DNA of 63,281 nucleotides, filler included, from Dimorphilus gyrociliatus (GCA_904063045.1; 7 parts of 7 records of this genome joined end to end with filler, not necessarily neighbours in it), one strand, 5' to 3'. Shown: positions 48,604 through 55,282, numbered from the whole stretch's first letter. Numbers and translations: made by a program. The notes: generated from the letters alone by a model not told the origin.

Positions 48604-49830
48604 CAATGCTAAATTATTTTCAATCTCTAATTTCATAAAAAAAAATTACTTCTGCTTTCAGAAGTTCACGGAGTTTTATTAGTGTAAAAAACAACACACT
48701 GTATTTACAAACACCAAGTGAATTTACATTAAAACTTTCCACTCTTTCAAACTGGATCTTTCTGATAATATCATCTATCAAAATCTCCCAAAGCAACTTT
48801 ATCAAAAAAAAGACATACAAATTCAAAAGAAGAATATTGCTTAGAAAGAGGATTTCTTATCAGGTAGACATTTGTATAATGATAAAAAAATGAATAGACA
48901 ACAAAACCAGTCTACAACGAATGAAGCAGTCAAATAAATTTAGCATGTGTGTATAAGGAGGAAGCATATTTACTTATTATATGTTTTTAGTAGTATTATA
49001 TGGGTACAGGAGAAAAATGGTCCCACTAGAGAAAAACGTCCCACTATTGGAGGAAAAACGGTCCACTGGAGAAAATGTCCAATAGATGAAATGCCTATAA
49101 GAGGAATTTTGATGTAGGGATGAAAATATTTAATATTCAGAGTTTATAAGGGAAATTTGAAAGGAAAAAACTAAATAAGAACAACTGGAAATATTTGAAT
49201 ATGAATATATTAAATAAGTACAACTAAAGACCAATAATAATAATAATGATAGACAATAGTGTAAACAAAATTGAAGAACAAAGAGATATTAGACTGGGCT
49301 ATAAATATTGGGAAGCTTTTTCAAGTTAAATCCAATGATGTGATTGAAGCAACCTCAAATTGTTGCCATAAGCTAAATATTTTGCTTTGAATATTCTGAT
49401 ATGCTTTTCTTTGCTGTCTACAGATTTTCTTCTCGCTCAAGCAGTTTTTTATATAGTTTTTATCAGATCTGCTTCTCTTTTCAGTTCATCCAAAAAGGGA
49501 ATAGAAGCCAGAGTTAGATTGATGATTTTTGTTCAACCTGTGATGCCAGCCCTCAAGGTCATTATTGGTTCTGATAGCCTCACCATATACAGACCACATC
49601 TCTGGTTTAAAATATCCATCTATCCATTGAGTTTCAATGTTCTCAAATAAAGGATGTATTTCAAAGGAACATATTTCTTTTATAGCCTGAAAAGTTGGTT
49701 GAACTAAATCAGAAGGCAGGAAAGGTAAGGTCATTAACTTCTTCATGACATCATATTCTGCTCCTCTTTCCTTGTACATCTTACAAAATCCCAATTCCTG
49801 GAAAAAAAACATATGTATTATATGAATTAT

Positions 49831-49934
49831 GGAGAAAACGTCCACTGGAGAAAACGTCCACTGGAGAAAACGTCCACTGATTGGAGAAAACGTCCACTGG
49901 AGAAAACGTCCACTGGTTGGAGAAAACGTCCACT
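49831..49934 (+). repeat. Subterminal array, 6 x GGAGAAAACGTCCACT
   Basis: Six perfect 16-mers with two 4-nt spacers (GATT, GGTT). Confidence 0.97.
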
Positions 49935-51528
49935 ATGTGAAGAATATATTAAAAAATACTTTTTCAAATTTAAATTTTTATTATTGATTTTGAGATATAT
50001 CCAATACATTCCCATAATGCAATCACTTTTGGTAGCCATTTTGAAATCCAGACAGGAAACAGTTCTGGGATCTTCTATGTTTTTCATGGAAAGTGAATAT
50101 TGTGCATATTTCATCTACAATTTTTCAGAATTTTTTGCAGTTTGAAATATATTTCACTATTGAAAACCATCAGAAAAAACACAAACTTTAGAATTGATAT
50201 CAGTAAGTTATAGAATATTGTGTTGAAATGATTTATTTATAAATTAGCTTTATTTTTATAGCAGCCATTTTGTTTATCATTATTGTTAATTGTTTAATTT
50301 TTAAATTTACACAGTTGGTTATTGATAGAGATTCCAAATTGAACATGGCACCAATTTGTTACATTTGTGAAGAGAGAATATATGGAAGACAAAATCAAGA
50401 GAAATGTCAGCTTTGCTGTCATTTATTTAAAATACATAAAAAATGTTTGGATTATAAAGGTTTGTTTAAGTTTTTTGTCACTATCCTTCCTTACAAATAT
50501 GTTTTTATATTTTTTCACAGATCAATGGCTTTTGCTTTTATGGGATCTAAGAGAAAGACAGCCTACAAGAAATTATTTAAGGTACAATAATTTTGCATTT
50601 TAAATTGAATAATCTAATTTGTTAAATTAACAGGCAATACAAGATTTAACAAATGGGCATAGCCCCAAAAAAGTTGTTGTAGACTTTGAAAAAGCTATTT
50701 GGAAAGCACTATCATTCACTTATCCTGAAGCAAACATTAAAGGGTGTGTTTTTCACTGGACACAGGCAATATACAGAAAGATTCAAGTAATACTTTAATT
50801 TAGTATTTGAGGTCTAGATAGAACTGACATATTTATTTCCAGGAATTAGGATTATGTAAGATGTACAAGGAGAAAAAAGCTGAATATAGAATCATGAAGA
50901 AATTAATGGCATTACCATTCCTGCCCTCTGATCTGATAGAACCAACATTTAAGACTATTAAAGAAATAAGTCCTATTGAAATGAAGTCTCTATTGGAGTA
51001 CATTGAGACACAATGGATAAATGGATTTTATAAACCAGAGGTATGGTCTGTTTATGGTGAGGCTATAAGGACAAATAATGATCTTGAAGGATGGCATCAC
51101 AGGCTTAACAAGAATCTTTGCTCTAACACTGCATTCTATTTGCTTTTAGATGAACTGAAAAGAGAAGCTGATCTGATAAAGCTATATAAAAAATTACTGA
51201 GTGAAAAGAAAATTTGTAGACAGCAAAGAAAAGCATATCAGAATATTCAGAGCAAAATATTCAGCTTATGGGAACAATTTGAAATTGCCTCAATTACCTC
51301 CCTGGACTTACTTGATAAAGCTTCTGACATTTATTCACCAGTTTTAAAATACCTTTATTCTTTAATGTTGTTACACTGTTGTCAATCATTCTTGTTATAA
51401 TGCTTGTTTTTACTTAATCAATATATTAATATTTAAATATTTGTAATTCTTATTATTCATTTTTTCCTGTCAAATTGCTCTAAAAACTCCATCTATCAAA
51501 TATCTTATATCTTACTTTGAAGTTTTAT

Positions 51529-51632
51529 AGTGGACGTTTTCTCCAGTGGACGTTTTCTCCAAGCAGTGGACGTTTTCTCCAAACAGTGGACGTTTTCTCC
51601 AGTGGACGTTTTCTCCAGTGGACGTTTTCTCC
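51529..51632 (-). repeat. Subterminal array, 6 x GGAGAAAACGTCCACT (inverted)
   Basis: Six perfect AGTGGACGTTTTCTCC with spacers AAGC and AAAC. Confidence 0.97.
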
Positions 51633-52884
51633 TGTACCCGTATTATATCTGCATCTGAAGTGGTTGATTCAATTACTTGAATCTTTCTATAAACTGCTTG
51701 AGTCCAGTGAAAAACACATCCTTTAATGATTGTCTGAGGATAAGTGGAGGATAAAGCTTTCCAAATAGCCTTTTCAAAGTCCACAACAATTTTTTTAGGG
51801 CTATGTCCATTTGTTAAATCTTGCATTGCCTGCTTTGAAAGTTATTAGATCATTAAAGTTGAAATGTAAAGTTTCTGTACCTTAAAAAGTTTCTTGTAAG
51901 CCACCTTTTTCTTGGATCCCATAAAAGCAAATGCCATTGGAACTTGTTTCATCTCACCATTCTTTTTGATGAATCCATGAATGGAAAAAAGTTGATAAAA
52001 TGGGTCTTTTACACATTTAAATGTGCCATCCATAAACCATATTTTACCCTTTGATAATAAGTCAATTTGCTTTAAAGTTGAAAATATCAGTATTCTATCA
52101 TTCTCCATTTGAACTGGATTTGTCTACAAATACTTAATCTATTTGTTTGAAAGTGAATTACACGATAATTGGTCATATAATCCCTATAAGTAATGTTGAA
52201 ATGATATTTATCATTTTGTACTGGAAAAATATCTAAAAATTTGAACAGAAACAAGCAAAATAAACTGGATTTTTGTCCTATTTCTCTTGAAACAAACATT
52301 TTGTTCTTTTCCAACAAGTAATACATAAGTAATTAATTATGAAATGAGTACTGTCATTTGAAATTCTTTTTAAAACATATTCACCATTTATGTATTCAAA
52401 AAATTTTCTTTCTAAAAGTATAATTTGAAATTTCCTAGGTGTCAAAAAAAAATTTAGAGCAAATCACTCACTTTTTAGCTTTGATTGACAAGATTGCATT
52501 TCAACATATAAATTGTCAAAATTTTTGGAATTGGCACAAAATTCAGTTAAATTATGTTTAGCACATTTATTAAATAACACTGGATAAAATTCCTTTGATT
52601 CATCATCATAAACCTCTGCTATAAAAGTAACAGAGTTATCTGATCCTATTTTGAATGCAAATCCATATGCAAATTGGATGAAAGAATGTAAATGCCAAAA
52701 TATTTTTACAATTTTTATATTAAAATTCATATTTAAAAAATGTTTTAAAAATTCAAAATATAAAAAAATATTTTTTTGAAAATTTATACTGAAAATCAAA
52801 AATTTAATTAGTAAATATGTACACATAGGTACAATACATTCGCCAGCTCTATTTTACAATAAATAAGTAGTATTAAACTAGTAT

Positions 52885-54260
52885 TGTTTCAATTTTGAAT
52901 GAAAAATCATAATGGAAGAGAGGTCATTGCTTTATGTGACTCAGGAGCACTTTTATCCTTTATTACAGAAAAAGAAATCAAGTTAATGGACCCAAAATTC
53001 ATAAAGATGAATACCACTGGCTTACCAATTATTACTTCAGCAGAGGGAAATGCTTTAAAGACAAAAGGAAAAACCAAACTAAACATCCAGTTTGCTGGAA
53101 GAATTTTTTATTTTGGAAAAACTTGATATAGCTATAATTCTTGGTTGTGATTTCCTAGAAAATACTGGAGCTCTTTTTAATTTTGCAACAAAACAAGTTT
53201 CTCTTCCATTCTTTATCAGAAAAGGGGAACCAGTTAAAAAGTTTCTGCAACAAAATCAAAACCACCAAACCAAGTTTAGAAAACAAGGCAACATACAAAA
53301 AGTAACTGTTGGAATGATTGGACAACACTATCAAGAGTATGACACTCCTTCAGAAGTTTCAGATAGTGTGGACTCAGATATGGAAATTACTGATCCAGAT
53401 ACTGGATATGATACAAGCAATACTTTTGGTTCAAGCATAGTCTATGAGGAATTCCATGGCTTTGACTCAAATAGCAACTATGGCACAGATGAAACTTCCA
53501 GTACTTCTGAAGATTATGGTTCAGAAGCAAGTGCTGAACCAGACAATAACTCAGACTCAGATTTGGACTTAGTGAATTGCACAAACTCATCTGAAGAAGC
53601 AACTGACAACACACCTGATTCTGACAATGACTCAGTTATTGTTATAGATTCATCTGATGAAGAGACTGGCAATGCAACTGCTTCAGATAACAACTCAGTT
53701 ATTATCATTAATTCATCTGAAGATGAAGCTGAAAACACAACTGAAGAATTGGCTACAGAAATGGAAATGAAAACACAATACATAGAATTAGAAGATGGAA
53801 TAACTATCAAAATTGAAAAAGAACAAAAGAAGACTCCAACAACTCCTGAAATAGAAGAATTACAGCTGGAAAGTATTGAGTTTGAACATTTGTCTGACCA
53901 AAATGTACACAATATTAATTCAAATACAGTAGAAATTGACAATTATTTACATGTGTCCAAAAATAATCTTGACAAAAGCAGAGAAGAATTATAAGACATG
54001 ATCAAGAATTATGAAGACATTATTGCTACAAATCAAAATGATATTGGTTCACCAGATGTCCCACCAATGGCAATTGAATTATTGGAAGATGTGAAACCTT
54101 TTAAACAAAGACCATACAGATTACCACCCAACAAACAACAGGAATGCAGGGATCAACTTAATGGATTACTAGAGAACGGTTTAATTAGAGCAAGTAAAAG
54201 CCAATGGGCTTCACCAATTGTTTTTGTGAAAAAGAAAGAAGGAACATTGAGAATGTGTGT
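52885..54260 (+). mobile_element. Gypsy pol fragment (protease - acidic linker - RT start) inside the outer MULE, no LTRs
   Basis: EVIALCDSGALLSFI (DSG at 52938-52946), IILGCDFL, ~240-aa acidic tract, then KQRPYRLPP..WASPIVFVKKKEGTLRMCV cut abruptly. Confidence 0.9.
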
Positions 54261-54800
54261 ATTATGGGAATGTATTGGATACACCACAAAATATAAATCT
54301 TAACTTCCATATAACAATTATATTTCTAAGAAATATGTAAATTCTATATCCAATAACAAATATTCACAAATTGAAATTTTAATAACCTTTTTTCCACATC
54401 TTATGTACATAGTCAACATTTTCTCCAGTGAATATTTTACACAGAGCATGTTTTCTCCAGTGGACATTTTCTCCAAACAGTGGACATTTTCTCCAGTGGA
54501 CATTTTCTCCACAATTCGTATTATATGTTCAATACTACTTAATAATGAATAGGATCTAAGACTTCAAAGAGTCCATAATAAACAATTAATTAAAGTCATT
54601 ATTATTTGGGTTTATAAGTTTATATATTAATCATATTGTAAAATTCAAGTTCAATTGTAAATTGCAAAATTTAGCTTGAAAATATGTTGCCACGCCTTGT
54701 ACAGGCACCACCCTACACAAAAGTAGGTCAAGCCTGCTTATCTCTATATTAGCTATCAGCACAGTGCAATACTAGTTTAATACTACTTATCTGCAGATGT

Positions 54801-54994
54801 TGTTGAAAACGCCAACAGTTTTGTGGTTTTACCCTAACCCTAACCCAGCCCTGGACTCACTTCTAAGGGTTCCATTGTTCCTAACCCTAAGTTTGGACCC
54901 ACCTAATTACAAACCAAATACTTTCATATTTTCCCTAACCTATTCCCACCCAAAATCTCACCCCAAAAAGACACCAAAATGGGTGTTTTCAACA
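54801..54994. mobile_element. Related CCCTAA-bearing MITE (different TIR subfamily)
   Basis: TGTTGAAAACGCC / GGTGTTTTCAACA inverted ends; TTTTACCCTAACCCTAACCC at 54827-54846, as in the 55767 copy. Confidence 0.7.
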
Positions 54995-55282
54995 GCCCCC
55001 TTATCTACTATAGAATAAAGCTGACGAATGTGTGTGTATAGAGATTTCATTGGACACAAAAAAAATTCATATTTTCCTAATCAATCATAAATCTCTTTAC
55101 AAAAGTTCAATTACCTATTATTCCTTTTGAGATAGGGTTGTTAAGGTTCAGTACATTTTCTCTAAAATATTCATAAGAATAAAATTGGCATGAGAGATAT
55201 CTTTATAATTGTCAATAATTTTGCTTTAAATTTTATTGAAATCAGCCAAGTAGTTTCTGAGATGTGATTTTTAAAGAAAAAA

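Follow-up and report, generated by a model that had tools for sequence, protein, structure and literature searches.

The window is a stretch of 63,281 nucleotides, filler included, from Dimorphilus gyrociliatus, a marine annelid with a very small genome, and the piece analyzed here spans its positions 48604-55282 (30.5% G+C). This piece holds two nested transposons of the Mutator-like element (MULE) type. The outer element (49002-54517) starts with GGGTACAGGAG at 49002 and ends with CTCCACAATTC at 54517, and the inner element (49824-51639), which is inverted relative to the outer one, starts with GAATTATGGAG at 49824 and ends with CTCCTGTACCC at 51639. An original prediction had described both as Mutator-like elements with perfect flanking repeats of one and the same 9-mer, and every coordinate it gave proved correct by exact search. 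We read the piece for repeats by exact search, self-blastn and Tandem Repeats Finder (TRF), and for proteins with Pfam profiles and with tblastn using P0017, a D. gyrociliatus protein (DgyrCDS14576, CAD5126447.1, 1,155 aa); exons were also searched individually. The genome of D. gyrociliatus measures 73.8 Mb, of which MULE sequence makes up only 1.17 Mb (1.50%); Mariner and MULE represent its DNA transposons, and its transposable elements (TEs) cluster in gene-free islands, so that nesting of one TE within another is to be expected (PMC7854359). The supplements of that genome paper contain no TE consensus or terminal inverted repeat (TIR) data (PMC7854359).

The 9-mer GTATTATAT occurs exactly four times in the piece, and every copy abuts a transposon terminus; its reverse complement was absent from the piece by exact search. 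The copies at 48993-49001 and 54518-54526 are the outer element's left and right target-site duplications (TSDs), while those at 49815-49823 and 51640-51648 flank the inner element in the same way, the left one being native intron sequence as judged by intron alignment. Both elements therefore carry perfect 9-bp flanking direct repeats, within the 8 to 11 bp, typically 9, that characterize MULEs. The inner TSD is exactly 9 bp since the adjacent bases differ at both sides, and the outer one is 9 bp provided that the outer end carries GGG like the inner L end, a tenth matching G being ambiguous. The flanks of the two sites read tagta|GTATTATAT|gttca and catat|GTATTATAT|ctgca, and neither flank reading nor TRF revealed at either site a TA array, the kind of microsatellite targeted by elements of the MuTAnT type. 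As predicted, the 9-mer fits the near-palindrome RTATWATAY, and its core TATWATA (positions 2-8) is a perfect 7-nt palindrome. RTATWATAY has no match in the piece beyond the four GTATTATAT copies; the expectation from 100 dinucleotide-preserving shuffles was 0.68 +/- 0.68 sites, and no shuffle had as many as four.

The 9-mer is target DNA and not part of a terminus. It is reverse-complemented between the two elements, reading GTATTATAT beside the outer L end and ATATAATAC beside the inner L end, and no further direct repeat was found beyond the 9-mers. The outer element is collinear over the insertion: its positions 49140-49808 match inner positions 51489-50832 at 80.8%, and 51672-51939 match 50791-50523 at 83.3%, with the outer coding sequence and splice sites running on exactly across the inner element. 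The insertion interrupts an intron of the outer transposase on the minus strand, of which the 5' part (51649-51676, 28 nt) begins with a GT donor and the 3' part (49798-49814, 17 nt) ends in an AG acceptor. With one copy of the 9-mer this intron measures 28 + 9 + 17 = 54 nt, compared with 56 nt for the homologous intron of the inner subfamily (50787-50842, plus strand), which contains no RTATWATAY. Global alignment of the two introns places the 9-mer opposite native sequence, which in the inner subfamily reads ATAGAACTGAC; the alignment scores 50 when the 9-mer is included and 38 when it is left out. The opposite orientation and the native-intron alignment together indicate that the 9-mer was neither carried in by the inner element nor homogenized by conversion, and carry-over from a donor site was rejected on these grounds. 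The inverted insertion into an intron of about 54 nt, and the status of the 9-mer as target, thus stand as originally proposed, and the nesting is real in the assembled sequence. An RNA gene, the kind of target used by Dada-type elements, was also rejected, as the piece has no Rfam or tRNA match.

How improbable is it that two insertions share the same nine bases? Two random positions of the piece share a 9-mer, on either strand, with an empirical probability of 9e-5. Equal use of every 9-mer with no more than one G/C would bring the probability of an exact match to 4e-4, and restriction to pure A/T 9-mers would bring it to 4e-3; the observed 9-mer, which has a G, falls outside that last class. 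Palindromic positions 2-8 are found in 2.4% of all 9-mers of the piece and in 4.6% of the AT-rich ones. Moreover, the inner element landed in register on the sole RTATWATAY, and the sole TATWATA, of the 3,691-bp outer element, which is 1 in 3,691 positions. Because an exact match is improbable and the core is palindromic, a strong symmetric target preference is favored, and we infer that the identity of the two TSDs reflects such a preference.

Other likenesses were observed around the target sites. The left flank of the outer element holds a near-copy of the target plus its right-hand context, TTATTATATGTT (48974-48985 compared with 54518-54529). It lies upstream of the occupied GTATTATAT by 19 bp, and GTT follows the right copy of the latter. 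The near-copy may have arisen by chance in AT-rich DNA, by a small duplication within the locus, or as the footprint of an old excision. At the inner left junction (49815-49830), the R terminal motif GAATTAT and the opening 7 nt of the target, GTATTAT, differ at one base, and the junction is scored by TRF as a 9-nt tandem. This likeness may be accidental, or it may hint at a target similar to the terminus of the element, as in some bacterial insertion sequence families.

Several features place both elements among the MULEs. The Pfam MULE profile (PF10551) matched the outer exons with 23.1 bits (profile 1-53) and 28.8 bits (profile 60-98) and an inner exon with 28.6 bits; the domain is split by an intron between profile positions 1-53 and 60-98, and the motifs DGTF, VVDFE and NNDLEGWH are visible in the translations. 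The terminal regions of about 110 nt have arms that are 90-100% complementary, as in MULEs with long TIRs, except for the asymmetric outermost 7 nt. Both elements share one pair of unlike ends, L being GGGTACA and R being GAATTRT, each followed by GGA and then by 16-nt units (L end GGGTACAGGAGAAAA, R end GAATTRTGGAGAAAA). Such composite ends, made of a short terminal motif and subterminal tandem repeats, are those of Phantom/Tm1-like Foldback-type MULEs. A FLYWCH finger lies upstream of the catalytic domain in P0017 and is conserved across an alignment of 11 relatives; neither copy in the piece has it, since it is deleted in the inner element and not detectable in the outer one. Taken together, the two elements are Mutator-like elements of the FLYWCH lineage, and the FLYWCH domain points to a placement in the Phantom-like clade. 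They are new members of a known clade.

The inner element has both ends in pristine condition. Its R end, on the 5' side of the transposase (49824-49934, plus strand), consists of GAATTAT followed by six perfect 16-nt repeats GGAGAAAACGTCCACT, and its L end (51529-51639, minus strand) of six perfect 16-nt repeats followed by TGTACCC (GGGTACA when read outward), so that all subterminal repeats are perfect (12/12). All its exons lie on the plus strand. The first coding exon (50345-50458; MAPICYICEE...) encodes a Cys/His-rich, PHD-like finger identical to residues 563-600 of P0017. It is followed by an internal-deletion junction (50459-50524) at which P0017 residues ~601-918, with the FLYWCH finger and the first catalytic aspartate (DGTF), are missing. 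The next exons (50525-50581 and 50634-50786) encode the second half of the MULE domain, with VVDFE and CVFHW, and the last exon extends from 50843 to 51343. By tblastn, the last exon (match 50840-51343) was identical to the P0017 C-terminus over 168/168 aa (100%), and the remaining exons were identical as well, save for splice-edge residues. From this identity and the perfect terminal repeats, the inner element is young, and the loss of the FLYWCH finger and the first catalytic aspartate makes it non-autonomous. We thus regard it as a young internal-deletion derivative, of about 1.8 kb, of an autonomous element elsewhere in the genome, and its family looks recently active.

P0017, which was found with the longest inner exon in a whole-library protein search, is the sole annotated autonomous copy of the inner family. 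It has matches to FLYWCH (PF04500; 37.3 bits, E 3.1e-9) and MULE (52 bits, E 9.7e-14), with the Cys/His-rich finger upstream, and this autonomous copy is apparently intact. Its residues ~566-610 show a C4HC3-like Cys/His pattern by eye, and no Pfam PHD match was obtained at E<=0.01. The gene model is chimeric, with a host-like N-terminus of about 500 aa (weak F5/8 type C match), exons derived from the 5' untranslated region of the MULE, and a complete transposase. A second D. gyrociliatus paralogue, P0018, is 50% identical to the inner exon. Protein searches with the 179-aa inner exon returned, within its length range, only relatives with <=45% identity, and searches with the family-specific N-terminal region of P0017 matched only P0017 itself. 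The other relatives were unnamed proteins of sea urchins, amphioxus and crayfish, and no solved structure of any P0017 relative was found.

By comparison, the outer element is degraded. Its L end (49002-49101, plus strand) has the 7-nt GGGTACA, GGA and then degenerate subterminal repeats, whose period is about 18 rather than 16 because of 1-nt indels. Single-base additions occur in the A, C and G runs of these repeats (49002-49080; 17% indels by TRF), and reflect either genuine decay or errors of long reads left unpolished in a repeat. The transposase remnant lies on the minus strand. Its last exon (49303-49797) encodes the C-terminal part, including the catalytic-E motif TNNDLEGWH; by tblastn it shows 69% identity to P0017, and its reading frame is disrupted by two in-frame stops and by a stretch that is frameshifted. 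The preceding exons (51677-52114, as ~52114-51881 and 51829-51677) encode the MULE domain (DGTF, VVDFE, CVFHW) and are ~79% identical to P0017. Neither tblastn with P0017 nor the exon searches detected the N-terminal half of the outer transposase. Overall, the outer element is 70-79% identical to P0017 at the protein level and ~81-83% identical to the inner element at the DNA level. The stops, the frameshift, the missing N-terminal half and a retroelement fragment show that it is old and dead, and we classify it as an old, rearranged, non-autonomous MULE.

The retroelement fragment is a piece of a Ty3/gypsy pol gene (52887-54257, plus strand, ~1.4 kb) antisense to the transposase, and includes a protease with its DSG motif, an acidic repeat and the N-terminus of a reverse transcriptase (RT). 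The first ~95 aa of the RT match the structure of the Ty3 RT (4ol8, E 2e-7), the protease matches are weak, and the acidic Ser/Asp/Glu repeat has a 63-nt unit present 2.6 times at 53583-53744. The fragment stops abruptly at 54257/54258, where MULE subterminal sequence resumes, and represents either a template-switching capture or a truncated nested insertion. Immediately at its left edge, self-blastn (E 9e-7) matched 24 nt (52863-52886) perfectly, in inverted orientation, to 54767-54790, a stretch some 250 bp beyond the outer R end. This copy is probably filler DNA taken from the local flank during gap repair, in which case the outer element would have been rearranged in place at this locus. 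The outer R end (54258-54517, minus strand) comprises a subterminal region homologous to inner positions 49987-50021, about six 16-nt repeats of the GGAGAAAATGTCCACT type and the terminal GAATTGT. Farther out, the right flank has a telomere-type repeat (ACCCTA x 2.7 at 54831-54846), with degenerate copies nearby.

We also examined related MULEs in metagenomes (80 loci, 31-47% identity) by looking for inverted-repeat pairs with flanking duplications and by setting the element ends through comparison of copies. The FLYWCH-MULE families of host-associated metagenomes keep unlike terminal motifs of 7-8 nt followed by tandem subterminal repeats. The motifs were GAATTAC and GGAAACA (loci L066/L061/L067), GATTTCC (L002/L008), and GGTGTGCA and GGAGTACG (L034/L035), the first of these families having ends close to those of the D. 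gyrociliatus elements. At none of the 80 loci did the left flank of an element agree with its right flank, even where the copy was apparently complete, a mismatch probably due to chimeric assembly of repeats in short-read contigs. For the D. gyrociliatus family, the single-end flanks from metagenomes are not decisive.

With a probability of roughly 0.6, we read these data as evidence that target choice by the family is strongly and symmetrically biased toward an RTATWATAY-like site. That it reads RTATWATAY nearly base by base, so that most genome-wide copies would lie in the motif, is a more tentative proposition that we consider somewhat doubtful. The sequence-specific family of the original prediction is plausible and unproven: the chance of an exact match, 1e-4 to 4e-3, speaks for it, while the small number of events and the behavior of related MULEs speak against it. 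Indeed, several points count against a preference. There are two events only, and they were picked post hoc from a very large scan, in which some chance coincidences are expected somewhere. Muta1 showed no sequence preference at 60 yeast and 171 genomic sites (PMC5225508), and Tm1, with the same end architecture, has no TSD consensus in 45 elements (PMC3169594). Three related families from metagenomes (35-40% aa identity) provided eight single-end flanks, none of which showed an AT palindrome. Finally, a dimer of the subterminal repeat had 0 matches in exact scans of metagenome, prokaryote-genome and viral contigs, which yielded no further copies of the family. The main rival reading is a loose AT-rich preference for short TA-rich tracts, of a kind shown by many MULEs, with two 9-mers identical by chance. 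In its favor, Muta1 and Tm1 lack a TSD consensus, the flanks of related families are diverse, ~30% G+C makes TA-rich 9-mers common and the match was chosen among very many windows. We consider such a coincidence unlikely, if well worth keeping in mind: even the most generous null (pure A/T 9-mers used equally) leaves it at ~4e-3 with a G in the observed 9-mer, the palindromic core is a separate oddity at 2-5%, and within 3.7 kb there was no other matching site for the inner element to hit.

Far less probable are two other explanations. The targets might not be independent, owing to donor carry-over, conversion between ends or an assembly chimera of repeats. The Muta1 transposase can indeed cut outside the TIR (PMC5225508), the many 1-nt indels at the outer L end could be long-read errors, and the metagenomic relatives illustrate how repeats assemble into chimeras. 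Yet the 9-mer is reverse-complemented between the elements, unlike the product of carry-over or conversion, it aligns natively in an outer intron of 54 nt that holds one copy of it, against 56 nt in the sister intron, and the outer coding sequence and splice sites are exact across the insertion; we thus give this explanation very little credence. It is equally improbable that self-nesting is adaptive, the family maintaining its target within a transposase intron where further copies can land safely. The one nested insertion does lie in an intron, at the same 9-mer as the outer target, and the original prediction had taken the intron for a landing pad. This part of the prediction is not supported, since the homologous intron of the young subfamily (50787-50842) has ATAGAACTGAC and no target, and composition alone gives ~0.4-1.1 RTATWATAY sites per 3.7 kb of AT-rich element. 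The inner element is also devoid of any TATWATA, and nesting of TEs is expected anyway in TE islands (PMC7854359). Self-nesting would bring no selectable benefit here, because the outer copy was already dead and truncated when it was hit.

Under the favored reading, a preference for an RTATWATAY-like site, the history of the locus may be reconstructed as follows. An older element would have inserted at a genomic GTATTATAT, and would then have decayed and been rearranged, losing the N-terminal half of its transposase and gaining the Ty3/gypsy fragment. In a second, recent event, a deletion derivative of a DgyrCDS14576-type element would have inserted in the opposite orientation at the sole GTATTATAT of the old element. 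Both would have moved by cut-and-paste, catalyzed by a DDE transposase of the FLYWCH type, with excision as shown for Muta1 by analogy. The FLYWCH finger may bind the 16-nt subterminal repeats, and a two-fold symmetric transposase complex would make cuts staggered by 9 bp while preferring the palindromic, AT-rich RTATWATAY. Such a preference could arise from symmetric half-site contacts or from the deformability or bendability of TA steps. With a palindromic target and a symmetric complex, either orientation of insertion would be accepted, and selection of the target by sequence is proposed to account for the two identical TSDs.

MULEs are regarded as having little or no target sequence preference. 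If a strict palindromic 9-bp target is real, it offers a natural handle on target capture by the MULE superfamily and a case with which the general palindromic-target model of DDE transposases could be compared. The family would then be the first among animal Mutators to have a genuine consensus target, and its behavior a new form for MULEs. Should the match be coincidental, the locus reduces to one TE nested in another within a TE island, which is nothing unusual. The intact-looking DgyrCDS14576 and its pristine non-autonomous partner could make MULE target selection directly testable.

Among known systems, Rehavkus (arthropods and annelids; a Repbase group summarized in PMC6446971) has an annelid host, a 9-bp TSD and long TIRs in common with the family studied here. 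Its transposase has a PHD finger, to which the Cys/His pattern seen by eye in P0017 may correspond, although Pfam gave no PHD match at E<=0.01. The minisatellite that precedes the 3' TIR of Rehavkus had no counterpart detected by TRF beside the 3' end here, and the FLYWCH domain points to the Phantom-like clade. Tm1, a member of the Phantom subclass from Meloidogyne root-knot nematodes, shares the 9-bp TSD, a Phantom-like MULE transposase and many non-autonomous derivatives (PMC3169594). Its ends have an asymmetric 7-nt outer motif, GGA and tandem repeats of 13-15 nt, corresponding here to GGGTACA/GAATTRT, GGA and 16-nt units (PMC3169594), and one of its outer motifs, GGGTAGG (read outward), resembles GGGTACA. 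However, Tm1 was described as senescent (PMC3169594), whereas the inner family looks recently active. Muta1 from Aedes aegypti, of the Phantom group, shares Foldback-type TIRs, a terminal motif with subterminal repeats (12 nt in Muta1) and deletion derivatives; it makes 8-9 bp TSDs, and its cut-and-paste chemistry has been shown experimentally (PMC5225508, PMC5499845). It has little or no target preference in yeast or in the mosquito genome, in contrast to the 2/2 insertions that share one 9-mer here. MuTAnT from Medicago truncatula shares the 9-bp TSD and has a strong AT-only target preference of its own, which was read as a "safe haven" strategy (PMC4486113). It belongs to the plant Jittery-like lineage rather than to the animal FLYWCH lineage, and it inserts in long (TA)n tracts (mean ~12 repeats), whereas the sites described here are isolated, non-microsatellite 9-mers with a TATTATA core and a G at one edge. 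Maize Mu/MuDR also shares the 9-bp TSD and has its own statistically palindromic motif centered on the duplication (bioRxiv 10.64898/2026.05.18.725947). That motif is GC-rich (CCyCyCnsnGrGrGG) and weak, with insertions that are spread, while the putative motif of the D. gyrociliatus family is AT-rich and, if real, much stricter. MuTAnT (PMC4486113) and maize Mu (bioRxiv 10.64898/2026.05.18.725947) are thus precedents for target preference among MULEs.

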